Source of the DNA: Hyaloraphidium curvatum SAG 235-1 | Taxonomy: Eukaryota; Fungi; Monoblepharomycota | Reading direction: 5' to 3' | Assembly (NCBI GenBank): GCA_025558095.1 | Contig: JAIVFI010000012.1 | Location: 620,001 to 684,000, forward strand | DNA: 64,000 nucleotides | Shown here: in pieces, positions 15,702 through 44,500 of the stretch | Layout of the letters: every line of letters starts with the position of its first letter | How positions within the stretch are numbered: the stretch's first letter is position 1 | Notes under the pieces: model-generated | The model's input: only the letters and a program-made list of their open reading frames with translations | Databases searched by the model: none | What the model was told of the DNA's origin: nothing | Translations under genes and position numbers: made by a program

Positions 15702-16688
15702 CCCGACGCCAGGACTGCCCAGCCTAGCGGCACCCGGAGGTACGGTCAGGCCGGGGTCGCCGGCGTCGGGTACCCGTCCCGTCCGCGACGGCTACGTGTC
15801 CTAACGAGTGGCGCCCGGCCGCACGTCCGTCGGCCCCCGACGCTCGTCTGCGCACAGTGCGACGGCACCAAAGAGCGCCGTCGCCGCTGCGCGGTGGGCG
15901 TCGGGTACCCCCCCTCCCTCCTCTCCCCTCGTCCGCAGGTCCGTGGTGCGCCTGCGCCTCCCCGGATTCCGTCCCCGTCCTCGGTCCGCGGCCATTCTTG
16001 CCCCCGATGCCCATTTGCATATTCGGCAACGCCGGCGGTTCGCACCGCCGGCGCTGGCGGAGAAGGGCATCGGGTGCCCCGTGCTGCTGCCGTCCGACCC
16101 GGTTGAGCTCGTCCGTGCTTGTCCAGGTCTCCGTGCGACAGGATCGATGGTCGTCCCCAGGCCGCTCCCGATGCACCGAAACTCGCCGGCTACGACGGCA
16201 CCCCTGGCGCCGTCGCACGGAGCTCCGGTGCGTCGGGTACCCCTGCTCGCTCTCCGACGCCTCAGTGTCCGATGGCTCACGAGCCGCCGGCCTGTGGGTC
16301 CGCGAGTCCCCGACGCGAGCACTTTTCCGATTAACGGCACCCGGAAGCGCCGTCAGGTCGAAGATCGCCGGCGTCGGGCACCCGTCTCGCCTCCCTCCGA
16401 CGCCTCCGACCGGACCGAACGGGTGCCCGTGCCACGAGGTCGTAGGTCCCCGACGCCTACGTACCAGGCATGACTTTGACGGCACCGAAAAGTGCCGTCG
16501 CGTCTGAGGAAAGGGCGTCGGGTACCTCCCCTCTCCTGCCCCTCCCTCCCTGCCCTTGTCTGCGACAACCCGAGGGGTGCGCCTCCAGGTCCCGTCCCCG
16601 TCCCCGTCCTACGCTCCCGACGCCAGGGCTTCCACGGCACGCGCCGGCGGCGGGTTGCTGCCGGCGGCCTGGGGCTCCGGGCGTCGGG
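15702..16688. repeat. Hairpin array A: 7 units of CCCGAYGC..[inner stem]..GCRTCGGG(TACCC), period about 134-167 bp
   Basis: Left arms start at about 15702, 15836, 16003, 16167, 16309, 16449, 16616; complementary right arms end about 70 nt later; inner stems such as CGACGGCACC/GGCGCCGTCG. Confidence 0.85.
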
Positions 16689-16940
16689 TGCGCGCCTCTC
16701 CGGGACGCGGCGCGATTCCCCGAATGCAAACGGCGGCACCTCCCGGCGCCGCCGCCGCCGGCCTGCGCGCCGCGTCCTCGGTCTCCTCGAGCGCGTCCGC
16801 TGTTGCCCAGGTCCGGCCAGCGGCGGGGCGGGGACGGGACGTGCGGATGGGTGGATGACCTGTCGGTTCGCCGGGCTTCTCCCCACCGCCGCACAACCAA
16901 TCATCCCCTCCCCATCCATTCCCGTCCCCCACCCCCACGG

Positions 16941-18311
16941 CTAAACCACCAGCCTCAACCCCCCATCCACCACGATCCGCGTCCCCGTCGCCGCCCTGAG
17001 CGCCACGGCGGCCATCACCGCGTCCGCCACCTCGTCGGGCTGCAGCACGCGCCGCAGGGGGGTGCGCGAGGCCGCGAGGTGCAGGTCGGCGGGGCTGCGG
17101 TCGGGGACGAAGGGGGTGTCGACTTGCCGGGCGGGGCGGGGCGGGTCAGCCCCGGAACGGCGGGATGCAAGCGGGGAAGCGGACCCACCGGTCCCGGGTG
17201 CGACCGAGACCACGCGCACCTCGGGCGCCAGCAGCCTCCCCAGGCCCAGCACCATGCTGTCCAACGCGCCCTTGCTCGCCGCGTACGCGACGCCGGGGCC
17301 CTTGCCCGTCTCGCCGGCGATGCTGGTCACGGGCACCACGACGGCGTCGCCGCCGGCCTGGCGGAGGAGGGGGAGCAGCGCGCGGATGCACGAGTAGGGG
17401 CCGACGACGTTGGTGTGCAGGAGGGAGAGGACGGAGGAGGGGGATTCGGGGAGGTTTTGGGAGGGGAGGGCCGGGTGGGTGGCGGCGGCGGTGAGCACGA
17501 GGACGTGCAGGCCGCGGCCGGCGCAGGCGGCGGAGATGGCCAGGGCGGCGGCGAGGATGCTGGCGTCGTCGGCCAGCTCGAGGGGGAATATCTCGTGCGG
17601 GGGCTGGCCTGCGGGCGGCGGGGGCATGGAGGCGAGCAGGGCGCGGGCGCGGTCCAGGCCGGTGCGGTACGAGAGGAGCACGGTCGCTCCGGCGGCGGCG
17701 AGGCGCAGGCACGAGGCGCGGCCGATGCCGGAGGAGCCGCCAATGACGGCGGCGAATTTGCCTGCGAGGGGCCTGAGGGTGGGCGCGGGGAAGGGCAGGA
17801 GAAACAGCGGGGGTTGGGCGGGTGCGGCGGGGGGTTGGGCGGGGGGCGGTTGCGCCTGCTCCTCTGCCCGCTCCTGTACCCGCTCCTGTTCCAGCTCCTG
17901 TTCCGGCTCGGGTTCCAGCTCCTGCACGTGCCCGTGGTTGACCTGCACGGGTTCGATGGCCGCCAGCGGGGCCCCGTGTTGCAGCTCGCCGTACGCGGCC
18001 ACCTCGTCCTCGCCGCCCGCGGGCAGCGCCTTCCTCCCCCGCGCGCGCCTCCCACCCCTCCCGCGCGGCACCGCCGCCGCTGCCGTCACGACCATCTCCG
18101 CCGACGCGCTGCCGCCCTCCATCGGCCCGTCGTCCTCCATCGGAAACGCGAACGGGTCGTCCGCGGCCGCCGCGCCGCCGCGGCCCCGCCCGCGCCCGCG
18201 CCCACCGCGGCCACCGCGCCCGGGGGACGGGGCGGCAGAGGAAGAAACGCCGCCGCGGCCGCCGCGCCCGCGGCCGCCCCGGCCCCGGCGGGAGGCGCGT
18301 TTGGGGGGCAT
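16941..18311 (-). CDS. Short-chain dehydrogenase/reductase with a long N-terminal RGG-rich, acidic and Pro-rich extension; 2 exons
   Basis: AAVIGGSSGIG, TNVVG, TSIAG, YAASK (YxxxK), VAPGT|VDTPF across intron 17123-17188, ATGTRIVVDGG; N-terminal MPPKRASRRGRGGRGRGGRGG in the same frame. Confidence 0.85.
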   Translation of the reverse strand: MPPKRASRRGRGGRGRGGRGGVSSSAAPSPGRGGRGGRGRGRGRGGAAAADDPFAFPMEDDGPMEGGSASAEMVVTAAAAVPRGRGGRRARGRKALPAGGEDEVAAYGELQHGAPLAAIEPVQVNHGHVQELEPEPEQELEQERVQERAEEQAQPPPAQPPAAPAQPPLFLLPFPAPTLRPLAGKFAAVIGGSSGIGRASCLRLAAAGATVLLSYRTGLDRARALLASMPPPPAGQPPHEIFPLELADDASILAAALAISAACAGRGLHVLVLTAAATHPALPSQNLPESPSSVLSLLHTNVVGPYSCIRALLPLLRQAGGDAVVVPVTSIAGETGKGPGVAYAASKGALDSMVLGLGRLLAPEVRVVSVAPGTGGSASPLASRRSGADPPRPARQVDTPFVPDRSPADLHLAASRTPLRRVLQPDEVADAVMAAVALRAATGTRIVVDGGLRLVV

Positions 18312-18454
18312 GGAAACGCGTTGTGTGGGGAAAGTCCCTTGGCGCATGCACCGCCGAGAAAGCCGAGGACAGGTCATCGGAGGACACCCGCGGAGGAGGG
18401 CGGATGGGGGGCAGGAAACCGCACGATGGCGATGAAAATGGATGCGTTGGTGCA

Positions 18455-21290
18455 TGGACGCGGGCTGGACGGCGGGCGGGCGGCGCCCTCGGGTGCCGCC
18501 CATGAAAGCACCTGGCCCGCGTCATGGCCGCACCCAGGAACAAGCGTACCCGGCTCGCCTGCCTCCCACGCCGACGCCCCGCGGTGTCGGTTGTGCTGAA
18601 GTCGCGGTGACGCCGCGGACGGCATCGGGCGGTTCCGCGTCGGGGACGAGCAAGGTCGGCAGGGGGAGCACGCCCCGACGCGGGGGCCGCTACCAGGCGA
18701 TACCTGCCCGGGCAGGCATCAGGCGCTTCGCATTCTTGTGGCGTATCCTGCGTCGGGGATGCTTCCGGACAAGGCATCGGACGCGGGGCTTTCGCGGACG
18801 GGGGCAGCGCCCGGATATGAGGCGTCGCCGCGGATCTCGGTTCATAGAACCCCGCGTCCGGCAAACCACATGCATGGGTACCCGGCCTCTGGCCTCATCC
18901 CGCCGACGACACCGACTGTTGGTGCAACGGGAGCGCGTGGTTCAGGAACGTCGGCGGGTAAAGGACGCCCCGACGCGGGAGGGGCCGGGAGGCGATGCCC
19001 GCCAGTGCGGGCATTTCTTCACGGCGTCTCTTCTTGCGTCGGGTTCCTGGCAGACGTGCATCGGACGCGGGGCTCATCGGACAGACGGGGGCAGCGCCTC
19101 GGGAGGCGTTGCCACAGAGTGCGAATGGAATGAGCCTCGCGTCCCGGCATCACCACATGCAGCGTACCCGGCCCCTCGCCTCCTTCTGTCGACGGCAGAA
19201 GCAGTCGGGGAACGGGATGGGAGGAAGCCGGGGACGGCATCGGACGTTTCCTCGTTTGGGACGATCGAGGTCGGGAAGGTGAAGGCCGCCCCGACGCGGA
19301 AGGCGCCACCAAGCGATGTCTGCCCCGGCAGGCATTGTTCGTGGTCGGTCCAGCGTCGGAATGGCTCGTGGACAAGGCGTCGGACGCGTGGCTCTGGAGA
19401 ACGGGGGCGGCGCCTCGGGAGGCGCCTCCTTTTCGGGTTGTGTTTTGGATCCCCGCGTCCGGCTGCAAAGCACCCAGCGTACCCGGCGGCTCACCTGGCT
19501 CCGGCGATGACACCATCTGTTTGCATCACGGCGTCGTTTTCAGCCGCCGGGGACGGCATCCAACGGCATCGGGGTTGCAGCGAGCAAGGTCGGGAAGCGA
19601 CGCCCCACCGACGCGGGCGGCTCCACCGGGCGATGTCTGCCCCGGTAGGCATTTCCGCGGAACAGGCGGTCCGCTTCGGGAATAACCTGTGGATGTGGCG
19701 TGGGACGCGGGGTTCCGCCGGGAGTGCAGCGCCTCTGGAGGCGTCGTCCTGCGCATCCAAACGGCCGAAGAACCCGCGTCCGGCTTCGCCAAGATCGCCG
19801 GGGAGTACCCGGCCCCGCCGCTCCCGGGGACGGCATCAGACGGTCGACGGACGGAGTCGATTTAGGTCGGGAATGGCGCCCCACCGACGCGGGAGGCGCT
19901 GCCGGATGGATGCTCGCCCAGGCGAGCAATTTCTTCCCGGGCTGGCTGCTTCTTGCGTCGATTAGAGCGCTGCGGACGTGCGACGGATGCGGGGCTTCGT
20001 GGGACAAGGCCACGCCTTGGGAGGCGTCGCCAACATTCGACAAGGATCGCCCGGCATCACCACGGCACAGCGTCCCCGGCCTTTGGCATCCCTGCACCGA
20101 TGGCTCGGGCTGTCGGTGCAGGGGGCCCAACGACCGGTGACGGAATCGGATAACGCGACGTTTCGGGGCCGGAACGAACGGTTCGGGATCGGAGGCCCGA
20201 TGCGGAGGCATTCCCTGTGTGATGCCCGTTGGCGAGGTGACGCAGGGGACGGCACCGAGCGTATCCGCGGCGGGACGATCGAGGTCGGCAGGGTAGGAAT
20301 ACCGACGCGGGCGGCGCTACCAGGTGATGCCCGCCGGTACTGGTATTGCTTGAACGCTGTTGTTCGCGTCGGGGTGGGTTCGAAGGCGTGGCATCGGACG
20401 CGGGGCTCGGGGACGAGGACAGCGCCTCGGGAGGCGTCGCCGTCGCACCTGCGGGAAATCCCCGCGTCCGGCATCACCACATGCAGGGTACCCGGCCTCT
20501 TTTGTTCCTACGCTGACGGCCGGGCTGCCGTCAGCGGGATGAGGATAACGAGCGATAGGCCGGGGACGGGCATCGGCTGTTCCGGGACGTCGGCATGCAA
20601 GCTCGGGACCGGACGCCCCGACGCGGGAGGTGCTCCCGGACTATGCTTGTCTTTGCGGGCATTGGCTTCTGGCGCTTCACGCGCGTTGTCGAAGATCCGT
20701 CCGCGGACATGGCATCGGACGCGAGGCCTGCCCTGCACGGGGGCGCCCGGGAGTCCGAGGCGCCGTGGAGTGCTCATGCCTAGGCCCCGCGTCCGGCCGG
20801 GAGCGTACTCGCTCCAAAGCTTACCTTCGCCGACAGCCGGCGCTGTTGGTGAAGATGAAGCTGACGTGCGGTGTCGCTGTTGGGCGTTTTCGTGGCGGAG
20901 AAGGGCGAGGATGGAATCGGACGCCGCCCCGCCGGCGCGATGTGGCATCGATGCTCCTTTCAAGTTACGGCCCGTTCATCCTCTCGCGCTGATGGAGTGT
21001 TTCATCGGACGTGCGACAGACGCGGGGTTTCGTGGAGGAGGGCAGCTGCGCCTGAAGAGGCGCCGCTGTCCTCGCCGTAGAGTCCCGCGTCAATGAGCGT
21101 CACCACCGCGCAGCTGTCGGCAGCGTGACGAGCCACTTGCGTCACTCCACCAACGGCTGATGTCGTCGGTGCTGTGTAGGCGGATGGGCCGGGGACGACA
21201 TCGGGCTGTTTCCAGACCGGGTAAGCGAGGTCTGGAACGGATGCCCCGACGCAAGGTGCGATCCCGGGCCTGCCTGGCGGACATCGTCTT
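18455..21290. repeat. Hairpin array B: about 9-10 degenerate units of roughly 300 bp, each with three two-tier hairpins
   Basis: Recurrent CCGACGC..GATGYYYGC/GCRRGCAT..GCGTCGG; CGGACGCGGGG..GCGCCTC/GAGGCG..CCCCGCGTCCG; GTACCCGGC..GCCGGGGAC; unit starts about 18673, 18968, 19291, 19608, 19884, 20302, 20616, 20920, 21244, plus a partial unit at 18455. Confidence 0.88.
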
Positions 21291-21728
21291 CTCGAAGGCC
21301 CTTGCGCTCGGGACCATTCACACCAGGACGGGGGCCGGCGCGCCGGACGCGGGATCCGACACGGTGCGGCGGCGCGCGCCACAGCGGCGCCTCCCCCGGA
21401 CGATCTCGCGTCCCGCACCGCCGAATCTCGCGCTCGGCTTCGGACGACCTATCGCCGACAGCATCCAACCATCGGGGAAGCGGGGCGACGTGAAGCCCGG
21501 GACAGAACTCCGACGGCCACGGACCGGGGAACCTTCGGCAACATCGGAATCGGGATCGGGGAGCCCGGACATGACGCGGGCTCGCTACGCGATTGGTGCC
21601 GGCCGGGGCAGGCACTAGGTTGCGTTTCCGGTTCTCGCGTCGGGATAGCCCGCGGACGTGAACCCTGGGATCTGCGGCCAAGCCGACCGTCCGCTCCCCG
21701 CTCCGTTTTCCTCATCTCAATACGCAGC

Positions 21729-22115
21729 TCAACAATCCGGCAAATTGTACCTCGTCATCCCCGCATCCAACTCGGGCTCCCCGCTTTCGACCTCCTCCGC
21801 CGTCGCCTGCACCCTGACCCTGAACAGCGTCGCGCACGGCCTCCTCTCGCCCGGCAGGTACGCCGCCGGCCTCGCCCCCGGCGCGTACGGATTGTCCCTC
21901 TCCGGGCGATAATCCCACACGGCGCCCAGCGCGGCCTCGGTGGCGGGGCGGAGGTCGGCGGGGGCGAGCGCGCGCACGCGGGGGCCGCCGTCCTCGCCGT
22001 TCCAGACGACGAGGACGTCCAGCTCCGGGGGCCGGGCGCGGAGGGCGGCGAGTTGGGAGCGGAGGAGGGCGATTTCGGCGCGGAGGGTGGAGAGCTCGTC
22101 CGGGGACGCGGCCAT
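21729..22115 (-). CDS. Small hypothetical protein (128 aa) with an N-terminal coiled coil
   Basis: ATG 22115; ELSTLRAEIALLRSQLAALR heptads; protein-like composition and GC3-rich codons. Confidence 0.55.
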   Translation of the reverse strand: MAASPDELSTLRAEIALLRSQLAALRARPPELDVLVVWNGEDGGPRVRALAPADLRPATEAALGAVWDYRPERDNPYAPGARPAAYLPGERRPCATLFRVRVQATAEEVESGEPELDAGMTRYNLPDC

Positions 22116-22208
22116 CGACGCGCGGTTGGGAGGACGACGCGACCGAGTGACCCGGGGGACGCGATCGGGGACGCGATCGGGAAGACCCCCTGCCACCCTC
22201 CACCCGCA

Positions 22209-23720
22209 ATGCCGCCCCTCGCGCTGACTCCCGAGGAGTTCCTCGTGCTCTTCCCGTCGTCCTCGCCGGCGGCCGCGTCGGCGTTCGCCGTGTCGCGGCC
22301 GGCGCCCGACCCCGCCGCCGCGCTCCGCGCCTCGGAGGTCCTGCCGCTGGACCGGCTGTCTTCGGTGCTCTCCGGCGCCGGCATGGCCCCTTTCGCGTGG
22401 CTGACGCGGCTGACGGCGCACCGTCTCCGCCTGTTCGCGCTGCCGAGCCTCATCGCGACGTTCTTCGCCGCCGCGCTGCTCTTCGCGCCCCCGTTCGCGG
22501 CGGTGGCGCTGTTTGCCCCGCCGTCGAGGTTCCCCGCGGGCAGGGTCGCCGCGGGCACCGTAGCCGCGTCGCTGTACCTGCTCGCGTGGCCGCTGGCTTT
22601 CCTCGCCATGCTGTTCGCCAGGCAGCCGTCGGCCAAGGGCGACCTCCCGCGCACGGAGCCCGCCGAGGAGCCCTATCGGGATCTGTACGCCGTCAGAATC
22701 GCCAATGGGCCCCCCCGATGGGTCATGCTAGCCGACGGGGGCCGGAAGGCAGGCACGGATGATCCCGAGGATCAGGATCACGGCGACCGGGACGGCCTCA
22801 CCCTGCTGTTCCACGATCCGGCCAGCGTCTCGTGCCCGTGCCCGCGCCCCACGTGCACAGGGGGCCGCTTGCCGCGCGGCATGGTGGCCGCCGGGATCGG
22901 GGACGCCCTCGTGACCCTGTGCACCGTCGTGCTCCCGCAGCTGGCCATGCTCTCCACCCCCATGGTGTCGTTCGCGGGGCCCTTTTGGACGACGCCCTGG
23001 AGCGCGGCGCTGGGCGCGCTGGCGCTCCTCGGGCTGGCGGCCGTCGCCGCGATCGGGGTGCCGAGCCGCTCGGGGACCACGGTGACGATGCCGATGATCC
23101 GCTTCCAGGGGATGCTGCAGCGCCGTGCGGTGGCCGCCGGACTGTGCGAGCTAATGCTGCGGATGGAAGCCGACGGATCCAAGCCTTCCCAGAGCGAGGG
23201 CGAAGAGCCGTACAAGTACCAGATCATCCACGACCACCTGTCCCGGAAGTGGTTCAACCTCTACAACCTCACCGACCGAACGCAGCTCGTCGTCGCATTC
23301 CTCCTCTCCGCCCTCCTCGTCTCGGTCGTCCTCTCGGTCGCCGTCGGCTCCTGCATCACCCTCTGGCAGCTCCTCGCCGCCCTCACGCAGGCCGCCTACC
23401 TCGTCCTCGAGCTCGTCTACGTCGCCGAATCCAACCTCCAGATCACCGCCGTCACGGACCTATACCGCGCCGCGCGGACCTCCCTGCGCCTTCTCGCCTC
23501 GGCAACCCCTTACCCGTCCCCCGCGCTGGCCGCGCACGAAGCCGTGCTGTCGTCGTTCCTCGAGGTCGACGGGTACCGCCTGCGCGCGTTCGGGACGGCG
23601 GTCAGCTACGGCTCGCTGAGGGGGCTCGTGGCCACCGCGGCCACGGTGATGCTGGGCCTGTGGAGCGTGGGGAGGGCTGCGGGGATCGGGTTCACGGTGG
23701 AGAGCGTGTGTCCGGCGTGA
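22209..23720 (+). CDS. Multi-pass membrane protein, paralog of 10986-12561 (GRL/DUF3537-like C-terminus); intronless
   Basis: LTPEEFLVLFP N-terminus (cf. LTAAELLALFP), CPCPRPTC, YQIIHDHLSRKW, VGSC, ESNLQI..LY, C-terminal RLRAFGTAVSYGSLRGLVATAATVMLGLWSVGR..VCP. Confidence 0.8.
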   Translation: MPPLALTPEEFLVLFPSSSPAAASAFAVSRPAPDPAAALRASEVLPLDRLSSVLSGAGMAPFAWLTRLTAHRLRLFALPSLIATFFAAALLFAPPFAAVALFAPPSRFPAGRVAAGTVAASLYLLAWPLAFLAMLFARQPSAKGDLPRTEPAEEPYRDLYAVRIANGPPRWVMLADGGRKAGTDDPEDQDHGDRDGLTLLFHDPASVSCPCPRPTCTGGRLPRGMVAAGIGDALVTLCTVVLPQLAMLSTPMVSFAGPFWTTPWSAALGALALLGLAAVAAIGVPSRSGTTVTMPMIRFQGMLQRRAVAAGLCELMLRMEADGSKPSQSEGEEPYKYQIIHDHLSRKWFNLYNLTDRTQLVVAFLLSALLVSVVLSVAVGSCITLWQLLAALTQAAYLVLELVYVAESNLQITAVTDLYRAARTSLRLLASATPYPSPALAAHEAVLSSFLEVDGYRLRAFGTAVSYGSLRGLVATAATVMLGLWSVGRAAGIGFTVESVCPA

Positions 23721-23913
23721 GCGTGGGCAGAGGGGGAACAAGGCGTGTTTCAATCGGCAGAGACTCGTTCGCCACGTCCGGGACGCGTCGCCTCGTCCTC
23801 CCCGGAGCCGCTCTCGACCACGTCAAACGCGTCCACCTCGGCCGAAGCCCGTTCCTACTCCTTGTCCGATCACTCTGGCCAGTGATAGAGCCCGTCCATA
23901 CTGCGTGTACCGC

Positions 23914-24168
23914 TCACGCCTTTGCCTTTGCCGCCGCGCACCCCTCCGGCTTGTGCACCCTCTTGGTAGACGCCGGGAACCTCTCCAGTTTCTCCGCCGG
24001 CCGCACCGGTCTCTTGACCAGCTCCCCGCCGCAGTTGGGGCACCTCCCGGCCATTTTGTCCGTGCACGCGGCGCAGAAGGTGCACTCGAAGGAACAGATG
24101 CGCGCGTCGGGGGATGCGGGTGGGAGGGAAGTGTCGCAACACTCGCAGGTGGGGCGGAGCTCGAGCAT
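23914..24168 (-). CDS. DUF1272 family Cys-rich protein (bacterial type)
   Basis: MLELRPTCECCD..LPP.S.DARICSFECTFC..C....CPNCGGELV.RP.RP matches the DUF1272 pattern as I know it; intronless. Confidence 0.88.
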   Translation of the reverse strand: MLELRPTCECCDTSLPPASPDARICSFECTFCAACTDKMAGRCPNCGGELVKRPVRPAEKLERFPASTKRVHKPEGCAAAKAKA

Positions 24169-24955
24169 CGCGTGCGGGGAGGGCGGGGCGCTCGCTTTTC
24201 GCGGGTAGAGACAAGGCACTGTGCAATTTGGTGCTCGACGCGTTGAAAAGCGGCGAAGGAGAGGGAGCGGGTGCAGAGGATCTTCCGCCTGGCCCGGCCG
24301 CTTGCAGGAGAGGCCGCGATCCATCTGCCAACCGATTTCTCGCGTAACTATGCCGACGACCTGGCCATCGCCCGGGCTGCCGCCGTCCAGATTCTCCCCG
24401 CGCGGGGAGATGACCTCCCTCCGCTCAGCGTTCTGCCGCGGGGCGAAATCCAACGAACCCGACTGCCCCGCTGCTCGCACGTCCCGAGCTGCTCGTGTGG
24501 GCTTCGGATGGCGCGATACCCACGTGCACAATCCTCAATCAATCATTCAATACCAGCGCTAGTGTTTTTCACGTTTGTCGGCTCCCGAGGTGGTGCGGTC
24601 GCTCCTGCCTGCGTGCGCTGAAACAGTGCACCCCAAGGGCAGACAGGGCCGGCTCAAAGGCCCAACGACGGCGGGAATCCAAGAGCGGGGCGGGACGTAC
24701 CGGTGCGCCGAGGTGTGGTTGGACTAGAGGACGAGGTGGCAGTGTTGCAGATTCTGCTGGTCCCGGAGGAGGACCTTCCTGGCAACAGATGTCGGGGGAT
24801 CACGTCTCCGACGGCGCCAGAAAGCGTAGAACCGGGAACAAGGAAGGGAGGGAATACGCGTGACGCACTGAATGAATATCTTTTACCCCCGTACACTGCT
24901 AAAAAAACAAAGAAGTCACGGCACAGGGAGAACTGGCGGGACGCAGGGGGTGCGG

Positions 24956-28235: not shown

Positions 28236-28301
28236 ACGGGCGAGTAGAACACCCAGGGGAGCCAATTCGTGGAAAGTGCCATTGGATCGTAACAGGCGGC
28301 G

Positions 28302-31510: not shown

Positions 31511-31584
31511 ACGACAATTTTAGGTTCGCTCGATGATTTCTGATTCTGATCCCAATCGAACAATCTGCGTGTCCAACCTCTGCC

Positions 31585-33332: not shown

Positions 33333-34403
33333 ATGGCGGCGTCTACCAACGCTCGCCCGGCCCCGAACCTCTCGGGCGGAGGGCGTCCGGGCGACCATCC
33401 GGAAGTCAATCTCTGGCTGCGTCACAAGAGCTCCATTCGGAACGGCATTGTGGGGCTCCCCCCGAGTATCGCCGTCTCGGAGACGGACAGCAAAGCGTTC
33501 AAGAAATACTCGCTGTTCATCATCGAAAATATGAAGGTCGATGGGAAGCTCGTGTACTCACACAAGCTGCACGAAGTCGCCCGGTCGGAGACTCCCGTGG
33601 GTACTCGCCGGGTTCACCTTCCCCTGAGAAACTGATCTTTCGGGTACGCGTCGCCAGACCAAAGATTCCCTCGTCGCGTGTCTTTGGACCTCAGCCTCCG
33701 TCATGTACAAGGCCGCCGTCAGGAGCGCCGGAAGTCCCTGTACCGCATTGATCCAGACCGGTCACGAGAGAGAGAAGGGCCCGTGCCCGAACGAGCCGAA
33801 GTCGACATTCAACCTTTTGGCGGCCGAGCGGCTGTCGAGACCCGGGGGAGAGGGCTTCGAGCTCATTATTCGGGTGCTCGACGACCACGTGCTCAAGTTC
33901 ATCAAGAACAAGTAGGTGCTTTCCATCGACGAGTCTCCCAGTTCTTCTAACGCGAATACTGCAGCTTCGGCAATCTCAAATTCGGCCACAAGAACCTCAC
34001 CGAAGTCGTCGTGCCCATTTTTGCGGCCTACGCCTCGGGCACTGCCGGACCAAACAGCTTGCCGGAGCAGATCGAACTGCAGCTCCGTCAGGACCTCCCG
34101 TGGATCAACCTGAAGCTACTGACCCCGCGGTGGTGAGCCATTCGTTCACAGCGGTGACGAACGGACTTGATTCTGGTTGCCTCCAGGTGCGACGCCGTCA
34201 AGAGCATCGTCATTGGCATTTTCCCGAGGGTCGGAATCCCCGGCGTGGATGTCGACGACGAAGACGTGCTCTTGGCTCGGGAGGGAGAGTTCTGGGGGCA
34301 TTGGGTGTGTCATCCGGATCACCTGCGTCCCCAGCCGTGCGTGTATGCGAAGGGTGCGAAGCTGCTCCGTTCGAGGTGGCGCGCGAGGTGGAAACCGTAC
34401 TGA
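33333..34403 (+). CDS. Hypothetical protein, 4 exons, divergent from the C2H2 gene; lies inside the ACS locus
   Basis: MAASTNARP..RSETP|TKDSLVACLW..FIKN|NFGNLKFGHK..LTPR|WCDAVKSIVIG..RWKPY*; three clean GT-AG introns keep the frame. Confidence 0.6.
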
Positions 34404-34478
34404 GCAACGGTGGATTCCGCAATTGTAGACATCTAATGCAGCAGCCGCTGGCGGATACAGCTCCATATGGTGCAGTCC

Positions 34479-36209
34479 GATGTAGCCGTCTCCGGTCCGG
34501 TAGAAACCGTTCTCCAGGAACGCCGACCTCGTCGCCTCGGGATTCCTATAGTACCCCTTGATGATGTTGACCCCACGGATCCAGAACTCGCCGATTTCGC
34601 CCTTTGGGAGCTCCCGCATGGTGTCGGGATCGCAGACGATGACCTCGTTCAGGGGGTGCGCGATGCCGGCCGAATCGGGGTAATTGACGTAGTCTGGGAT
34701 GATTGCTTGTCAACAGGCGACTATTCAAAGGGCAGGAAAGCTCACCCATGCCGGAGATGCTCGTCGCGACGGGCGACGCCTCGGTCATCCCCCATGCAGT
34801 GCCGGGCGAGCCCTTGAACACCTTGGCGAAGTTGACGGCGAGCTCCGGGTGCGCGGGCGCGCCGCCGTAGCCGGCCGCAATGAAGCTGCTCAGGTCGCGC
34901 TTGCCGTTGGTGGCGTCGGGGTGCTCGACCAGCATCATGATCTGCGGCAGCCATTGTGAGCTCCAGCCGTCCTTCGCGATCCGGAGATGAACCCACGATG
35001 GCGGGCACGGCGCTCATCCCCGTCACCCTCTCCTTCTCGATGACCCTGAGCGCGTCCCCGGCCTCGAACTTGTACGCGATCACGAGCTTGCCCCCGTTGA
35101 GCGTGGCGCCGCCCAGGATCGAGATGGCCGTGACGTGGAACAGCGGCACGACGAGCAGGGTGACGCCCTGCGGGTCCGAGGGGCCGAGGGGCAGGCTGGG
35201 TAGGGGCATGGCGGCGCGCACTGAGGGGAGGAGGCCGGTTTGGATCGTCCGCGAGTGGCGGAAGAGGGAACCCACTGGCGCCGCGCAGCTGGCCGAGCAT
35301 GCCCACCCATTGGTTCGCGATGAAGTTCCTGTGACTCCCCAGAGCCGCTTTGGGACGCCCGGTAGTCCCAGAAGTGAACAGGACTGGCAAGCAGAAGGCG
35401 GGGTCAGCTAGGTCCGCCCAAACCCATGCCGGCAACCCACTCGTCGCGTCATCGTCGGGGTGGATGTCGACGGGAGCCAGCGACGCCCGCCCCGCCTCGT
35501 GCTTCTTCATGACCGCCTCCCAGAGCACCGTCCCCTCGTACGCGGCTTTGGCCCCGCCGGGCTGGCTTCCGGATCGCGCGAGGATAAACTCGGCCACTCC
35601 CCCGCGCTTGAGCTCGGGGATCCTGGGCAGCAGCCTCTCGTGCCGCTCGGGGTCGATGATGGCGACCTTGGCGTCCGCCAGGGTGATGCAGTACGCGAGC
35701 TCGTCCGTCACCAACCAGGCGTTGACCATGGCGGGGATCGCGCCGAGGCAGATGGTGGCCCAGAAGGCGACAATCCATTCCCTGGTGGAAACGGCGGACT
35801 CAATTGACGCCGGCGGACGCGGAAAGCGGCCAGGGACCCACGGGTAGTTGCGCATCGCAATCACGACGCGGTCGCCCTTGCCGACGCCGTAATCCCTGCT
35901 CATCGCGTTGGCCAGGGCGTTGACACGCGCCGCCGTCTCCCCGTAGGTCAGCCGGTCCTCGACCTTGGTGAACGGGCACTCGTAGATGAGGTACTCGCGG
36001 GGCGCATGCTTCGCGACGACATCCTCCCAATACTGCCGCAAATTGGCGTAGCAGTTCTTGAAGGTTCGGAGCCAGCGTTTCTTCCCAGTGTGCCAAGGCA
36101 CCTGTTCGTATTGTGTCTCGCAGATGCCCCCCTCCGTTTCCATGATTATCCTCTCGCATTCCGCCAGGGTCGGGACCGCAGGGGCGGCGGGGGCGGCAAC
36201 GGCGGCCAT
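34479..36209 (-). pseudogene. Acyl-CoA synthetase (ANL/AMP-binding, FadD-like), main 5' part; apparently disrupted after the RTGD motif
   Basis: GVGKGDRVVIAMRN, LFTSGTTGRPKA, VPLFHVT, GYGGAP, AWGMTE, GEFWIRGVNIIKGYY, FYRTGD; several introns; the next ~40 conserved residues were not found. Confidence 0.8.
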
Positions 36210-36564
36210 AGTTCCGGACACGGGCCCGCCGGAGGGGTCGGACGGGCCGGAAGGGGTGCGCGGGAAGGAGTGGGGGACGGTGGGGAGGGAGCTTCGGCAA
36301 AACTTGCGGCAGACCGATGACTCCAGCGTTCGACAACCACCCATTACGCCCGAACCTGGTTCCAATCGACCACCGGGAGCCCAATTTTCATCAATAAAAT
36401 TGAGGACCCATGCCGATTGCGCGGGACGATCTCGCCGACTGCGCCCCTGAAAAGTTGGACTCGCGCAAGAGCGGATGCCGATCGCACGATCCTACCGAGA
36501 CGGCGCAGCGCGCGGGCAATCGGCTTCGGAATTTGGCTTCCAAGGCAAAACTCTATAGTCGCCT

Positions 36565-38016
36565 TCACGCGCTCTCCTTCTCCGCTGCCGGCGGCGCACC
36601 CTGCTCCGGATCGGCCGCGCCAGCCTCCGCCTTCTGCTCCTTGGCGTGCTCCCTCGCCGCCCTCCTCGCCTCCATCCTCCCCATCAGCGCCTGCGGCCCC
36701 CCGATCCCCACGCACGCCAGGTGCGACGCAAACACCGCCACCGTGATGGGGAACAGCACCTCGACGTTCCAGAAGAAGGACAGGAACGAGAGCAGGATCC
36801 AGCTCGCCGGCGCGCGCACGAACGAGGCAACGACGGCCGGCATGCCGGCGTTCAGCGCCACGGCGCGGTCCAGGCCCGTCCAGGTTGCCGCGGCGGAGCC
36901 CATCATGGTCCCCATGGAGAGGGTAGGGAACACGGGGCCGCCGACGAGCCCGCACGCTTCGCAGGTCCAGAAGCTGACGGACTTGGCGGCGATCGAGGCG
37001 GCGAGCAGCCAGCCCGGCAGGAGGGGGCCGAGGGCGACGACGGAGGCGAGGGTGGGCTCGCCGGTGCCGAAGGTCAGGGGGAGGCCGTAGGTGATCAGGC
37101 CGCAGATGGCGCCGGCGAGGGTCGTCAGCAGGGGGATCCGCGCGCGCGCGCCGAGGCGGGCGTCCAGGGGCTTCTTGAGTGCGGTAACGAGGGCGCGGAC
37201 GATGCCGCCGATGAGGAGGTGGATGAAGCCGATGGCGGCGCCGGCGAGGCCGACGACCAGGGCGGCGGCAAAGTCCCAGACGCGCGCGTTTCGTTCGCCC
37301 TCGTAACGCAGGGCGAGGGCGCTCGCGTCGAGGTATGTGGGCACCTGCAGCGCCGTGTAGACGGCGAAGGAGGCGGTGGCCCCGGCGGCGGCCAGCGCGG
37401 TTGCCGCGGGCCCCTGCGGCCCGCCGATCTCGGACGAGATTAGCAGCGAGAGCAGGGGCGACGGGAACAGCGGGGCGAGCGCGGCCGCGGCGCCGGCGCC
37501 CACGAGGTCGGGCATGGCGGCCTGCGGCAGCAGCTTGGCGCGGATCAGCAGCCACGCCGTTACGTGCCCCGCCAGGCACCCCGCGGCGCCGAGCCCGGCT
37601 TCCGGGCCCATCGAAATGCCGCCGCACACGCCGACGACGCACAAGAGACACACGCGCAGCGCGATCCACGGCTCCACGGCCTTCTCGGCGAGATCCTGCG
37701 CGAACGACGGGTAGGCATCCAATCCCGTCAGTGCTTTGCCGAGGCCGACGATGAGCCCCGCCGCCGCCGTCACGCCGATCCACCACGGCGCGCCGGCGCC
37801 CGGGAACAGCGACGCCGGCAGCTGCGGGAAGCCGGCGTCGCCCGCGGCCGACCACGCGGCGGGCGCCTTGCGGATCGCCAGGACGTAGCCGGTCGCAAAC
37901 AGCCCGAGCACGCCGCCGCACACGACCGCGCCCGCGAAGGACACCCAGAACGTCCGCGTGTTGGCATATGGAGGGCCGAGCGGGGATGCCGGCGCCGCCG
38001 GAGTCTGGGAGGCCAT
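36565..38016 (-). CDS. CLC-family channel/transporter, bacterial YfeO-like; intronless
   Basis: GGISMGPEAG (GxE motif), LTFGTGE, GLVGGPVFP; many TM segments; no CBS domains. Confidence 0.78.
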   Translation of the reverse strand: MASQTPAAPASPLGPPYANTRTFWVSFAGAVVCGGVLGLFATGYVLAIRKAPAAWSAAGDAGFPQLPASLFPGAGAPWWIGVTAAAGLIVGLGKALTGLDAYPSFAQDLAEKAVEPWIALRVCLLCVVGVCGGISMGPEAGLGAAGCLAGHVTAWLLIRAKLLPQAAMPDLVGAGAAAALAPLFPSPLLSLLISSEIGGPQGPAATALAAAGATASFAVYTALQVPTYLDASALALRYEGERNARVWDFAAALVVGLAGAAIGFIHLLIGGIVRALVTALKKPLDARLGARARIPLLTTLAGAICGLITYGLPLTFGTGEPTLASVVALGPLLPGWLLAASIAAKSVSFWTCEACGLVGGPVFPTLSMGTMMGSAAATWTGLDRAVALNAGMPAVVASFVRAPASWILLSFLSFFWNVEVLFPITVAVFASHLACVGIGGPQALMGRMEARRAAREHAKEQKAEAGAADPEQGAPPAAEKESA

Positions 38017-38174
38017 CGCGAGATCCGCGACGTTGTTTGCGACGCGTCGGCGGGCTGGTGGGCACAAGCCCCGATGCATCATTTCACCTCGCGTGACATC
38101 CGGCCAACCGAGGACGGACTTGGTCCATCGCAGTCTCTGAGGCCGGTCGATTGGTAGAAGTGCCCTCCTGCCCA

Positions 38175-39839
38175 CTACGCACGCTCGTGGACCACCCTGC
38201 CCTCGAACACGGTCATCACCGCCTCCGTCCCGCCAATCTCCGCCTCCTCCACCGCGTACACGTCCCTGTCCAGCACCGCGACGTTGCACCACCTCCCCAC
38301 CTCGAGCGTCCCCGCCTCCCCTTCGAGCCCGAGCGCCCTCGCGTTGCGCGCCGTGAACACCTCCAGCGCCCTCCCGACGGGGATCGCCTGCCCGGGGTTG
38401 TGCCTGTTCCCGGCGGCGTCGGCGCGCGTGACCATCCCCGCGATGCCGATCCACGGGTTCATGCTCACGGCGGCGGCGGGCCAGTCCGAGCCCGCGAGGA
38501 CGGGGGTCTCCGAGGAGAGGAAGTCCTTGATGGGGAAGTAGCCGTCGGTGCGGTGATCCCCGACGCAGCGGCGGATGTCAGCCATGATGGGGGAGGGTTT
38601 GAAGAGGTACGGCGAGAGATCGGCGACGGCGTTGAGCTGCTTGAAGCGGGGCAGGTCCTCCGGGTGCACGAAACCCGCGTGGGCGAGCTCGTGTCCGAGG
38701 CGGTCGGTGCCGTTGGCCTTGCGCGCCGCCTCGATGGCGTCGAGCGCGGCACGGATGGCACCGTCGCCGGCCGCGTGGAGCTTGACGGTGAACCCGCGGG
38801 CGTCGAGCTGCGTGACGTCGTTGGCGAGGGTGGCGCCCGAGATGTGCAGCGAGCCGTGGTGCCCCGGCGGGAAGCCCGGGTCGGGGAGGTACGGGTCGAT
38901 CATGCAGGCCGAGCGCGACTCGCAGAGAGGCACGCCGTCGAGGTACAGCTTGACGTGGCGGGTGTCGATGCGCTCCGTCTTGTAGGCGTCGCGGAGCCGC
39001 TCCAGCTCGGCGTAGTCGAGCGGCGTCTCCCTGTGTCCGAACGGCGTGGCCAGGCACGCGGCGATCCGCAGCGTGAGCGCCCCGGCCCTGTCGGCGTCGC
39101 TGTACGCCTTGAGGAGCGGCTCGGCGACGTTGGCGTCCTTGAGCCCGCACAGGCCGTAGGCGGCGGCGCGCTTGCAGAGTTCGGCGAGGGCGGCGCGGTA
39201 CTGCTCCTGCGACCAGTCGGGCCAGCGCGTGCGCGCGTTCATGTCCACCTCTTCGACCAGCAGGCCGGTCGGCTTGCCCGCGGCGTCGCGGACGACCTTG
39301 CCCCCCTTGGGATCCACGAAATTGTCGTCGATGCCGAGGTGCTCCAGCGCCCGGGAATTCGCCCATCCGTTGTGCCCCGATTCCTCGCGGATGTACACCG
39401 CGCGCCCCCGCGACCGCGCGTCGAGCCACTCGCGCGGCGTGGGCACCAGCTCCCCCGCGTACCGCGACAGAAAGTCCGAGCCGATGCGGCCGCCCATGAC
39501 GTACTCGACGTGCGGGTTCGCGTCGAAGAACTTCCCGAGCGCGGCCTCGATCTCCGCGGGGGTCGACGAGGTCGGGAACGCGGCCGAGAAGAGCGACACG
39601 GCGGTGCCCGTAAGCGGGTGCACGTGCGCGTCGATCAGTGCGGGGATCGCACGGCGGCCGGCGAGGTCGACGACCTTTGTTTCGGGCCCGCGCAGGCGGA
39701 GCACGTCGGCCGCGGGGCCGACGGCGACGACGCGCCCGCCGCGCGCGGCGAGCGCCTCGGCTTCATCGCCCGATGCGGCGGAGATGGTGATGCGGCCGTT
39801 GGTGAGGATCAGATCCGCGTGAGCATCCGGCGAGGCCAT
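38175..39839 (-). CDS. Amidohydrolase 3 family (YtcJ-like) metallohydrolase; intronless
   Basis: VVDLAGRRAIPALIDAHVH, SGHNGWANS, GKPTGLLVE, VKLYLDG, LHAAGD, HELAH, GSDWP, GTLEVG, TVFEGRVV. Confidence 0.92.
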   Translation of the reverse strand: MASPDAHADLILTNGRITISAASGDEAEALAARGGRVVAVGPAADVLRLRGPETKVVDLAGRRAIPALIDAHVHPLTGTAVSLFSAAFPTSSTPAEIEAALGKFFDANPHVEYVMGGRIGSDFLSRYAGELVPTPREWLDARSRGRAVYIREESGHNGWANSRALEHLGIDDNFVDPKGGKVVRDAAGKPTGLLVEEVDMNARTRWPDWSQEQYRAALAELCKRAAAYGLCGLKDANVAEPLLKAYSDADRAGALTLRIAACLATPFGHRETPLDYAELERLRDAYKTERIDTRHVKLYLDGVPLCESRSACMIDPYLPDPGFPPGHHGSLHISGATLANDVTQLDARGFTVKLHAAGDGAIRAALDAIEAARKANGTDRLGHELAHAGFVHPEDLPRFKQLNAVADLSPYLFKPSPIMADIRRCVGDHRTDGYFPIKDFLSSETPVLAGSDWPAAAVSMNPWIGIAGMVTRADAAGNRHNPGQAIPVGRALEVFTARNARALGLEGEAGTLEVGRWCNVAVLDRDVYAVEEAEIGGTEAVMTVFEGRVVHERA

Positions 39840-40340
39840 TGCTGTTTGGTTCTTGGGAGACGATCGACGCGATCGACGTGCGGCACGTGGAGAGCCGTCG
39901 CGTCCAGACGGCAAGATTCCACAGGAGCCCACCGGAAAGGGGGCGCGAAAGCAGCGTACGGCAATGTAGAAAGCGATTAGGGAGTTTGGGTCGTTGACCC
40001 GTCCGATCGGCTTGCCTGTGGTGGTTGGCAGCCGGAGTCACGGAGTGAGGCGCGATCGGCCGCCAAAAATACTCGAGTGGCGAGGACTGCCTCCCGCTCA
40101 AAAGATAACGCGACGTGTCGACTTGTTGCAGGCAGGACGCTCGAGCCCTGTAGTCGACCTCGAGATAACGCATTTGTCGCCGGCAGGGCGGCCAGAGCGC
40201 GCCATCGAACTCGGAAAACCCCGGCAGCGAGAGCCCGAGTTCCTCCACCTGCTAACCCGAGCCCGACGAGGGTTCGCTCGGTCCACTCGCGCCGGTATAG
40301 ACGCGGATCGCGAGTTGCATTCCTCCTCCGTTCGCCCACG

Positions 40341-41453
40341 ATGCCCATCGTGCACATGAACTATTTGCCGCATGGCAACATCATCCTCGACCCTCAGAAC
40401 AAGTACCCCGTCATGAAGGAGGACACGCAGGTGGGATTTCCCGTCGTACGACCCCACCGGTCTCGCTCACTGCCGCGCGCGCAGGCCAGCCACGATTCGA
40501 TGCTCCAGGCCGCCAAGCTCGTCGCATCGCACAAACCCGACCTGGTCATCCTCACGTTCCCGCATGGCACGGCGTCCAACCAGGATTTCACCGTCTACAC
40601 CAAGGCGCCCTTCTCCTCGGGCACCGCCGAGTGGCTCGGGGAATGGACGGACTTCCGCGTGCGGGTGCCCGTGGACGTCAAGGCGACGGACGTGCTGTGC
40701 GACGAGGCCGAGGCCAAGGGGTTCGGGATCGCGAGGCTGGTCACGGCGGGTGGGGCGCCGGGAGCCGAGCATTTCATGCGGTGGAGCGAGGTCGTGCCGA
40801 TCTGGTTCCTGGAGGAGGAGCTCGGAGGCAAGGTGCCCTACATCCTAATCCAGAAGCCGCTCGTGGCGACCATGTGGGTACGCACCGCGGTACTTGCCCG
40901 GTGCCGTGCCGAGCATCTGTTTCCAGGACCGACCCCGTGTCGAAGAAGGACACGCTCCTCGAGTTCGGTAACTTCCTGTACGACCTCTGCACCACCGGCG
41001 CCCTCGCATCGCGGCGCATCGTGCTCGCCGTCTCGGGTGACCAGGCCCATACCCTCAAGCCCAAGTACTCGGGTCTTGAGCTGGGCCTACCGGGCGCTAG
41101 CGACTCGGTGGGGCTCGAGGGGGTCGACGATTCGCAGGCGACCCCGTTCGGGGTGCACCCCCACGGCGCCATGTTCGACGCGGCAATGCGGAAGTGGTTC
41201 GGAACTCTGGATCCGAAGGATTTCGAGGATTCGTACCAGTACATGAAGAGCGCGATCGTGGGTGGACGCGCCGCCGATCGGGGTGCCGCTGACGGTGTCG
41301 GCGCAGGCGTGCGGTGCCGCGGGGCTCATGTCGCTCCAGCGGATCGTGGAGAGGTTCAAGGCTGACGGGAAGAAGGTGAACTGCGAGGTGCTGGCGGACA
41401 TTGCGCCGACATACTACGGCATGGTGACGGCGGTGTTCAACGTCGGGCCTTGA
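40341..41453 (+). CDS. LigB/Memo-like (class III extradiol dioxygenase subunit B fold) protein; multi-exon
   Basis: LPHG, KPDLVILTFPHG, WSEVVPIWFL, IVLAVSGDQAH, FDAAM..W, ACG, APTYYGM; introns at about 40431-40484, 40875-40926 and 41260-41306. Confidence 0.72.
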
Positions 41454-41772
41454 AAGGATGCTGCATCGAAAATAGACGAGCCGACCCTGTGTAGCCGATG
41501 GAACGGGTCACGAAGCGGCAGTGGCCCAAATCATTGGTTTTTCCTTGCTCTTGTGCTCCTCTGTCCTTTCGTTTCTATCGCATTCGCGAGGGACGCGCCG
41601 CTTTATTGCCGCTTTGCGGACCCCGAGACCCTCCGCAACGCCGCCGCAATTTTGCGGGAGCCGTGCCGTCAATCGGGGAAACGGACCCCACCGGTCCCCT
41701 GTGCGACGGTAACAAAAGGCCGGCGTCCGCGGGCAGCGATGCCGCGCCCTCTGCCCCCCGCCGCACCGCGAT

Positions 41773-42579
41773 ATGCGCATCCCGCTGTTGCTCCCCGCCG
41801 CCATGGCGCTCTGCGCAGTTGCGGGCGCAACGGCCGTGCTCCCGCCTCAGGCGGCCAACGCTCTCGGTGCTGCCCTGGAGGGCGCGAAGGGGTTGAGTGA
41901 GCCTGTTGCGGTGCCCGCCGGGAGGAGAGAGAGGCGGTGCGTCGCGCCTCGGTAGCCACCACGGACCAGAGTGACCCCCGGCCGTGCCCCGCAGCCAAGC
42001 CAAAGGACCTGCCAAGCAGCCTGCGAAAAAGGCGACAAAGAAGGCGGCCAAGAAGCAAACGGCCAAGAAGAAGGCCGTCCCCTCGCCGGCACCGAAGAAG
42101 GCCGCCGCGCCCAAGAAGGCTCCGGCCCCACCCCCGCCCCCGCCTCCTCCGCCCCCGCCCCCCCAGCCTCCTGCAGCTCCGTGGGTGGCCCCCTACCAGC
42201 CCATATGGTCGACCATGCCGACGTCGTGGTGCTCCGAGATCCTGCGCGTCATGAAGGTACGATGCCTCCTCATTCCCGCAGTGCTGACGCCCAATCCTGA
42301 CATCCGTCTGCCCCGCTCGACGTGCAGGACGACTGGGGCAACATCTATTGCGAAGCCAACGCCAACGGCGACGGATGCAACTGGCGCTACGCCGACCCCC
42401 AGACCCGGGCCAACCCGCCCGCCTGGCCGACCTGGTTCCGGATCCCGAACGATTGGATCCGGGGAAACGACTGGGCGATGCTGGTCTACTACGACCTGCA
42501 TCAGGACGGCTGTGGGCCGTACTGCCCGCTGCCGCCGAAGGGGCGGCTGCTGTGGAACGGGCCGGGCGAGGGTTGCTAG
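41773..42579 (+). CDS. Secreted protein with Lys/Ala-rich and poly-Pro linker and a Cys/Trp-rich C-terminal domain; 3 exons
   Basis: Signal MRIPLLLPAAMALCAVAGA; KKATKKAAKK, PPPPPP; DDWGNIYCE..CNW..WPTWF..CGPYCP..GC*. Confidence 0.65.
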
Positions 42580-42829
42580 GCCTCCCCGATCACTTGGGGG
42601 TGGATGGGCGGTGTGGAGATATCAACACCGTGCTGCACTGCTTCCGTCGTGAATCCAAAACATATGTGATATCCGACCTGATCAATAGCACGTTCGCCTG
42701 GTCTCTTGGCCGGCTCCTGGCAGGTTGCCGTCCCCTCGCACTCGCAGCCATCGAGACATCGGCACGAGGCACGTGCCTCTCCGCCTCTTCAGGCCGTCCT
42801 CATGCTGCCATGAGGTCCACGTCACCGCG

Positions 42830-44500
42830 CACGATCGATCACCTGTCCGACCAGCCCGATCGCCGTCCGTCCGTGTCGCCTCGTTCCTGAGGGAATCCGG
42901 CACCCGAGGACTCCTTCGACGCCATGCAACCAACGGTGCCGACGGGGAGAACGCGAAGTGCAAGGCATCCGCACCGTGCGCGGGTGCCAGAACTCGTGGT
43001 CCCCGTCGGCTCGATCGTGCCTCCTAACGGCTCGCGCGCCATCGGACCTCATGCACCGCCTATTGTAAGGATCGACTGCCGGGGAACACGACACCAAGCA
43101 AAGGACCGTCGGTCTCCTTGCGGCGCTTTCCCAGGTGGCGCATGCCCCGGCTGCCTTTTCCGAGCACCGCTTCTCTTCCTGCACGCTTCTGGTTCCCAGA
43201 CACGGCGGTCCACCACTGCAGGCATGCCGACGGCGCCTCCACCGTTCAAGAAACACCGGCCTTCCGCCTGTGTTCGTCCCGGGTCGGAGCCGTCGGCGCG
43301 TGCTGCCTCCTGATTCCGTGCCCGTCCTGTCGTGCTCAACATCCGCAGGCGACCGACCGCCGGCCGAACGAGCGACCAAGAAGCATCGGCAGCGACCGAT
43401 GATCGGCGGCGGCCGTCCCGCCGGCTGCCGTCCCTCGATGCACACCGGGCAGTCCCCGAAGCCCCGCGTCCGAGTCAGTGTCCGCGAGTCCATGGCGGAG
43501 CAGACAGAGCACACCGACTATGCGCAAGGAGGCGCGTCAGCATCAGCGTGGCCGGTGCCGTGCAGCCGCCGTGCCAGTCGGCTTGCTTGAGCTGGCTGGA
43601 GTCGGCGAGGCGCCCGGCGTCGGGGCGCGGCCTGCTCGCGCGGTTCCGTGGTGCGGCCGCCGGCGCGAGACACACTTTGGAGAACGTGACATAAGCAAAA
43701 CGCTGATGTCGCATCCGGAACGAAGCACGCGCCGGCCGCCGTGTGCGATCGAACACCTGTCCGCGGTGAGGTGCCCCGATCGTCCGTCCGCGTGGCCTTG
43801 TTCTGCGTGGATCCCTGACATCCATACGATTGTTCGACACCGAGCGCTACCCTGCCGACGGGGCGGATGGCAGCGATGCATGAGGCACGAGCGACGCCCG
43901 GGCCCGACCCCGCCGTCCCCGTCGGCTTGGATCGCGCGCCGTGTGCCGTCGGAACCCGATGGCTGCCACCACCGAATGGACGGCGTATGTATCGACTGCC
44001 GGCGAATGTGAACCTGAGAAAGGATCGCCGCTGTGCGGTGCTTTCCCGGTGCCGCACATGCCGGCTGCCGATCTTGCGTCGAGGGGTCCATCAGGCGGCT
44101 AATCCTCGGATCGAGCCGCGGCGACAGGAAATGCGAAATGTCGACGGGCCACTACCTTGGCGTTGACGAGCACCGGCTTCGCGCCGGCGCTCCTACCGGC
44201 CGCGGTCCCGTCGGCGGTGCCGCATCCGAGGTGGCGTGTCCGTCCGCCGCGCACGGGGTCCGTCGTTGACTTGCCGCCGGCCAGGAGCTGCCGGTGAGGT
44301 GGCATCGGCATCGGGATCTGCCAATACTCATCCGCGCGGATTCCTGCCCGGCTGCCCGTCCCCCGATGCGCGTCCCCCGTCGAGAAGCCCCAGGTCCGGC
44401 TGGCTGCCCCGCCCGTCCGGCGAACCCGCGGGGGCACGCCGACGACAACAACGACGAGGCCGGTGAGGCATCAGAGTACCGGATTTGGTGTCGGCTGCGG
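42830..44500. repeat. Hairpin array C: about 11 alternating two-tier hairpins (GCCGACGG/CCGTCGGC and GCCGG/CCGGCTGCC), period about 145/290 bp, with a ~915-bp higher-order duplication
   Basis: Type 1 at about 42938-43010, 43226-43297, 43514-43581, 43854-43926, 44140-44215, 44438-44495; type 2 at about 43078-43151, 43359-43425, 43659-43736, 43998-44065, 44276-44352. Confidence 0.8.

Follow-up and report, generated by a model that had tools for sequence, protein, structure and literature searches.

Clusters of structured RNAs and of DNA palindromes have been described in several systems with which the intergenic hairpin arrays of a 64-kb stretch of the Hyaloraphidium curvatum genome, designated A, B and C, can be compared. 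Tandem microRNA clusters (miR-430, mir-17~92) and the microRNA-like RNAs of fungi resemble the arrays in consisting of local hairpins of ~70–85 nucleotides (nt) in a single orientation, in having one arm better conserved than the other and in sharing a common 5' core, and genes for Dicer and Argonaute are present in the genome. The arrays differ from them in having a stem that is often open midway, conserved apical loops and a conserved base of only ~10 bp. Box H/ACA RNAs have the same layout of a lower stem, two middle strands and an upper stem-loop, but the arrays lack the boxes, the distance from pocket to box is wrong, there is no excess of matches to rRNA and the two middle strands often pair with one another. 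The repeat units of NORAD and the A-repeat of Xist are, like array B, diverged copies of a unit that keep short hairpins and linear motifs; these, however, are animal RNAs with known protein partners. Intergenic arrays of imperfect palindromes are also formed by the bacterial REP/BIME elements and by integron attC sites. These are prokaryotic, act as DNA or at the ends of mRNAs and share one consensus over many loci; the arrays described here belong to the nuclear genome of a fungus and differ in sequence from one to the next.

The sequence examined (G000:C12:620001–684000, 'the window' hereafter; ~68 % G+C) belongs to an assembly of 31.9 Mb in 55 contigs. The literature on H. curvatum that was found concerned the mitochondrial genome, with nothing on nuclear hairpin arrays, and no description of hairpin arrays of this kind in fungi was found in the literature. 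The comparisons reported below give about an even chance that the arrays are locally duplicated RNA hairpin modules, kept by selection and transcribed as long multi-hairpin RNAs.

Organization of the arrays

The three arrays were found where the original prediction had placed them (15.70–16.78, 18.46–21.43 and 42.83–44.56 kb of the window). All three are non-coding, the codon-position GC periodicity of the flanking genes being missing there. The arrays and their hairpins are as follows.

15700–16780, strand undecided, minus slightly favoured: array A, seven hairpins and a variant
15702–15770, 15836–15905, 16003–16074, 16167–16237, 16309–16378, 16449–16522, 16616–16688: hairpins of array A (A1 to A7)
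16702–16778: eighth, variant hairpin of array A (fold −51.4 kcal/mol)
18546–21430, plus: array B, nine units of ~300 nt
18546, 18878, 19164, 19479, 19805, 20072, 20488, 20805, 21131: starts of the array B units
18457–18523, plus: extra h3-like hairpin, preceding the first GTACCC box of array B
18968–19044, plus: h2 of array B (B-h2), unit 2, an almost continuous stem of ~34 bp with a 4-nt loop
18672–18759, 19290–19359, 19607–19681, 19884–19961, 20301–20373, 20616–20692, 21244–21314, plus: other B-h2 copies
19062–19146, plus: h3 of array B (B-h3), unit 2
18777–18861, 19380–19462, 19702–19782, 19984–20053, 20394–20471, 20715–20796, 21018–21092, 21344–21414, plus: other B-h3 copies
42826–44560, no strand preference: array C, two copies of a unit of ~800–900 nt (42826–43740 and 43741–44560)
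42938–43010 and 43854–43926; 43226–43297 and 44141–44215; also 43552–43623: matching hairpins of array C

The hairpins of array A are 69–74 nt long, have the basal stem CCCGAYGC/GCRTCGGG and, on the plus strand, are each followed directly by GTRCCC (GTACCC or GTGCCC). Their spacing of 134–167 nt agrees with the 100–170 nt predicted for all of the arrays; the prediction did not hold for array B, where the repeat is a unit of ~290–330 nt present nine times (one unit measuring 416 nt), or to array C, with two copies of its much longer unit.

Each unit of array B holds three to four hairpins joined by conserved linkers. In order, it comprises a GTACCCGGCC box, a short hairpin h1, a segment hX that is likewise conserved (GGGGACGGCATCGG...AGGTCGGGA), the long hairpin h2, a linker (GGACAAGGCAT), the long hairpin h3 and a tail (CATCACCACATGCAG). 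The basal stem is CCGACGCGGG/GCGTCGG in B-h2 and GGACGCGGGG/CCCCGCGTCC in B-h3, and the apical loop of B-h3 is mostly TCGGGA. Both unit copies of array C, which sits between two other coding stretches, contain several hairpins with the basal stem GCCGACGG(GG)/(CC)CCGTCGGC; between the copies the basal stems were kept and the interiors replaced.

A fourth array was located 8.7 kb past the end of the window, at L011:2880–4085 (within L011:2700–4100, equivalent to G000:C12:692700–694100). It is built of ~155-nt units, in which the basal stem is GGCGCCGCGCA/TGCGCGGCGCC and the motif GATGCTGCC is conserved. Its sequence differs from those of arrays A, B and C, its two-tier design is the same, and its plus strand folds better.

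The variant hairpin at the end of array A combines a base similar to that of B-h3 (GGACGCGG...) with an apex of the array A type (GGCGGCACC...), which hints at a common ancestor of arrays A and B, between which a dehydrogenase gene lies. Of the seven occurrences of the rare sequence GGGTACCC in 300 kb, five fall in arrays A and B, and when array A is read on the minus strand both arrays have it on the 5' side of their unit.

Stability, conservation and covariation of the hairpins

Strong single hairpins were defined as those of 56–100 nt with a folding free energy of ≤ −36. The 15–22 kb bins that contain arrays A and B (bin 17 omitted) held 25 of them, compared with 25 in the remainder of the window. 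The density of such hairpins in the arrays was ~12 times that elsewhere in the window. The mean stability z of the hairpins, computed against dinucleotide shuffles, ranged from −3.4 to −4.4.

Conservation was uneven along the hairpin. Between copies, identity was 86–94 % in the better-conserved arm of the basal stem, 66–73 % in the apical stem-loop and 48–66 % in the middle strands, and the mean column identity between units of arrays A and B was 48–52 %. The apical loops and the linkers were also conserved. Base and apex are conserved in sequence as well as in pairing.

Covariation was scored on RNAalifold structures, with 500 shuffles and with pairing partners slid by 1–3 columns as controls. 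In array A, 83 % of cells were paired, 14 pairs had changed on both sides and the score was 0.328 versus 0.173, which none of the 500 shuffles matched; a single pair shows the series C-G, U-G and U-A. The corresponding values for B-h2 were 87.6 % and 0.311 versus 0.225, again matched by none of the 500 shuffles. Covariation was weaker in B-h3, where one of 500 shuffles matched the score and 73 of 500 the number of pairs. Sliding the partners reduced pairing to 30–53 % in array A, B-h2 and B-h3. The signal therefore exceeds both controls; the excess is clear in array A, moderate in B-h2 and weak in B-h3. The predicted retention of pairing under sequence drift was in this respect upheld, with the qualification that base and apex are conserved in sequence as well.

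A second measure, which does not depend on alignment of the middle strands, was obtained from chimeras whose 5' and 3' halves come from different copies. Chimeras between array A copies folded worse than the native hairpins (−38.6 compared with −45.5 kcal/mol, p ~0.0002). The corresponding test gave p ~0.03 for B-h2, and the difference for B-h3 was not significant.

Strand preference

The distribution of G·U pairs in B-h2 was strongly asymmetric: 43 such pairs on the plus strand versus seven on the minus strand, with z of −4.0 and −2.3, respectively. Most of them place G in the conserved 5' arm and U in the variable 3' arm. Such an excess would follow from tolerance of C-to-U changes at just those positions where an RNA pair is preserved, and it argues for selection on plus-strand RNA pairing rather than on a DNA cruciform, at least in array B. 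The fourth array had 29 G·U pairs on the plus strand versus 11.

The middle strands

The original prediction described the internal-loop strands as unique to each element. They are variable, at the identities given above, yet in many copies they pair with each other, and they are open in others. Nearly continuous stems of 30–34 bp were seen in A2, A7, B2-h2, B5-h2 and B8-h3 (the letter and number giving array and copy or unit), and open loops of 10–20 nt in A4, A6 and B1-h3; the former have the nearly unbroken duplex of ~20 bp or more that a Dicer-dependent precursor calls for, and the latter do not. When base and apex were replaced by constant helices, cognate middle strands paired slightly better than non-cognate or shuffled ones; the difference was significant in array A (−8.4 versus −5.8, p 0.03), not significant in B-h2 and at p 0.065 in B-h3. 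With folds ranging from continuous stems to open loops, the middle segment is a loosely constrained spacer and there is no uniform pocket. In array B the two strands are asymmetric: the 5' strand (of a fixed 13 nt in h2) shows 59–66 % identity and the 3' strand, of 12–25 nt, 48–53 %. Array A has the same asymmetry when read on the minus strand.

Searches for known families and further copies

Rfam 15 returned no family at gathering score, and widening the search to E ≤ 5 added nothing relevant; no tRNAs were found. A pattern scan of metagenomes returned no arrays, its 64 matches being single and unrelated.

In H/ACA RNAs the H box (ANANNA) comes right after the basal stems, the ACA box stands 3 nt before the 3' end, and 14–16 nt separate the pocket top from the box downstream of it. 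The array hairpins were rejected as H/ACA guides since no consistent H or ACA box follows the stems, as the original prediction had also noted, and since a 3' middle strand of 12–25 nt and a basal stem of 9–11 nt put the pocket top >20 nt from the stem end. What follows the stems is GTACCC or GTGCCC in array A, varied linkers in B-h2 and CATCACCACATGCAG in B-h3, where only some of the copies have an ACA at a distance of 10 nt. The genome's own rRNA genes served as targets for a scan with H/ACA geometry.

34318–36115, 81263–83060, 112954–114751, 180912–182709, 260152–261949 of contig C1 (G000:C1): small subunit (SSU) rRNA genes

These five SSU genes are 30–80 kb apart on the contig and form no tight tandem array; the one rRNA unit looked at (C1:24.5–37.6 kb) also holds the 5.8S and large subunit (LSU) genes. 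Against SSU, 5.8S and LSU rRNA, hit counts and top scores were like those for shuffled rRNA: the plus strand of array A gave 51 matches compared with 37±6, with a top score no higher, and the other five array–strand combinations were at the shuffle mean. A plain antisense scan against rRNA found longest runs of 11–14 nt, as in shuffles. The internal-loop strands thus show no excess complementarity to rRNA.

Whole-genome BLAST searches with arrays A, B and C matched each array to itself only, exact stem patterns and an array A covariance model likewise found these loci only, and a search for periodic GGGTRCCC returned the arrays themselves or chance and coding matches. Tandem Repeats Finder did not report the arrays. 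An automatic array detector run over 300 kb re-found arrays A and B and missed array C and the fourth array, and it flagged two other clusters, one plainly and one probably coding; being neither sensitive nor specific enough for a census, it gave no estimate of array density.

Three further candidates were rejected. The basal 8-mers show no unusual frequency outside the arrays and are no general promoter motif. Carriage as transposon cargo was rejected: the dehydrogenase gene between arrays A and B is single-copy in the genome, with one 52 % paralogue. Excision as mirtrons or from a spliced host gene was considered with the splice signals of the actin gene (5' GTGRGC, branch CTGAY, 3' YAG/AAG): the hairpins and spacers have no consistent donor, branch and acceptor signals, and the CAG-N-GTACCC junction between array B units, if spliced, would leave exons of 1 nt. 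The actin gene itself (48100–49720, minus) has six introns of 50–70 nt each.

RNA-interference genes

The genome encodes RNA-interference machinery. A Dicer gene at G000:C6:221030–222045 has a Dicer_dimer and two RNase III domains, further RNase III genes are present, and Piwi domains were found at at least three loci (C5:597912–598970 and two places within C17:197–211 kb). Small-RNA processing of the hairpins is therefore possible.

Origin of the arrays and alternative explanations

Under the explanation given an even chance above, each array would have arisen by an old local tandem duplication of a non-coding unit and have been kept for its RNA hairpin modules. The module would consist of a nearly invariant GC-rich basal helix of 9–11 bp, a free, loosely pairing middle and a sequence-conserved apical stem-loop of 22–26 nt. 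Long multi-hairpin RNAs would be transcribed from the plus strand in array B and, slightly favoured, from the minus strand in array A. The basal helices and the conserved linker motifs may then be cutting or recognition sites for Dicer or a class-1 RNase III, the products being stem-loops or small RNAs with a common GACGC(GGG) core in the 5' arm, as from a tandem microRNA cluster; perhaps half of the likelihood of the whole falls to this cutting step. Transcription, if it takes place, would put the arrays among the first families of structured non-coding RNA to be reported from a monoblepharid fungus and would make them an unusual case of whole intergenic regions made of selected hairpin modules.

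Several observations weigh against this explanation. The best-conserved part is the base, whose 10 bp fall short of a small-RNA duplex; precursors of the microRNA kind do not usually have conserved apical loops; and the large open internal loops of several copies (A4, A6, B1-h3, B3-h3) make a poor Dicer substrate. No site nearly complementary to the conserved arms was found in the 300 kb around the window. A clear strand preference is absent in arrays A and C. Covariation was tested on structures derived from the very alignments in which it was scored, the RNAalifold covariation term was slightly positive, and B-h3 was weak both in covariation and in the partner swap.

The closest rival, with a real if clearly smaller claim, is a long non-coding RNA that is left uncut and works as a decoy or multivalent platform, the same protein-binding hairpin being presented many times over together with linear motifs. 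Conservation of base, apex, apical loops and single-stranded linkers around a free middle is what such an RNA would show, and the nine ~300-nt units of array B and the G·U strand bias are in keeping with it; the modest pairing signal of the middle strands, however, is not needed for it. It is rather unlikely that the arrays have no function at the RNA level and are decaying palindrome duplications, with stems kept alike by hairpin-templated repair, arm conversion or GC-biased conversion. Both arms of the basal stem are indeed conserved in sequence and do not covary freely, B5-h3 and B8-h2 look degenerate, and the lack of strand preference in arrays A and C fits; but a process at the DNA level needs Watson–Crick pairs, so that the one-strand G·U excess in B-h2 and in the fourth array is unexpected, as is the conservation of linker motifs outside the palindromes in units otherwise ~50 % identical. 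Should the arrays prove not to be transcribed, a palindrome-preserving process at the DNA level would be needed, itself of interest. A functional DNA element, be it a cruciform or a series of inverted sites bound by protein, with a regulatory, insulator or origin role, was judged unlikely. The arrays fill whole intergenic regions with invariant basal motifs, array B lies in a divergent promoter region and array A ends ~30 nt from a probable start codon, all of which would suit a DNA element, yet the strand bias of array B, the compensatory substitutions in the apical stems and the ordinary frequency of the basal 8-mers elsewhere do not. The readings at the DNA level, functional or neutral, are possible mainly for arrays A and C.

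That the hairpins are bipartite guides of the H/ACA kind, whose middle strands pair with a target around a uridine, is very improbable, and for rRNA the idea is largely refuted: the succession of lower stem, pocket and upper stem, and middle strands unique to each copy, recall such guides, but these stand against the missing boxes, the wrong distance, the rRNA result, the frequent pairing of the middle strands with each other and the lack of an Rfam match. Slightly more room, though still little, may be left for a new modular class of RNA, with base and apex as a protein scaffold and with middle strands, different in each copy (and of a fixed 13 nt on the 5' side), that provide programmable recognition of targets other than rRNA; such RNAs would be guide-like but unrelated to H/ACA, C/D or microRNAs. 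Least probable of all are clustered miniature inverted-repeat transposable elements (MITEs), foldback transposons or a known satellite, the hairpins then being terminal inverted repeats. Transposons of this sort have many dispersed copies with common termini, and a satellite has homogeneous units, usually at several loci, to which the 48–52 % identity between units of arrays A and B does not correspond. Variable interiors framed by inverted repeats have that appearance, but the units run head to tail in one orientation with regular spacing, and the MITE and satellite readings fail because the 31.9-Mb genome holds no other copies of arrays A, B and C; within the searches made, this explanation is refuted.

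The general idea of the original prediction, an array system of structured RNA, thus stands, given the empty Rfam search, covariation above controls and the G·U strand bias in array B and the fourth array, whereas its specific proposals of H/ACA-like guides, mobile hairpins and, at least for array B, DNA cruciforms did not hold.

Gene neighbourhood and other features of the window

The genes adjoining arrays A and B are as follows.

12775–15669, minus: gene with RING and VWA domains, probable start ~30 nt from hairpin A1
16944–18503, minus: short-chain dehydrogenase gene, separating arrays A and B
21225–23717, plus: coding open reading frame (ORF) without Pfam domain, directly downstream of array B on the same strand

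Array A is flanked by the stop of the dehydrogenase gene and the probable start of the RING–VWA gene, both of which are on the minus strand, and array B takes up the 3 kb that separate the dehydrogenase start from the plus-strand ORF. A protein search with the dehydrogenase for synteny in related species matched its own gene only, and exact-protein look-ups were empty. The open frame of this gene is of 520–526 amino acids and the NCBI model (a hypothetical protein) of 377; short tandem repeats of 9–24 nt occur at 17854–17924 and 18161–18289, in the GC-rich N-terminal part of the ORF.

Elsewhere in the window, an FAD-dependent oxidoreductase gene (57075–58235, minus) had only bacterial clusters as its nearest neighbours in the protein atlas, Gemmatimonadota being the commonest, which in itself is no evidence of gene transfer. 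Two protein kinase genes on the plus strand, one with ankyrin repeats (5139–7205) and one with leucine-rich repeats (54918–56795), each have a kinase domain cut short where the ORF ends, presumably at an intron.

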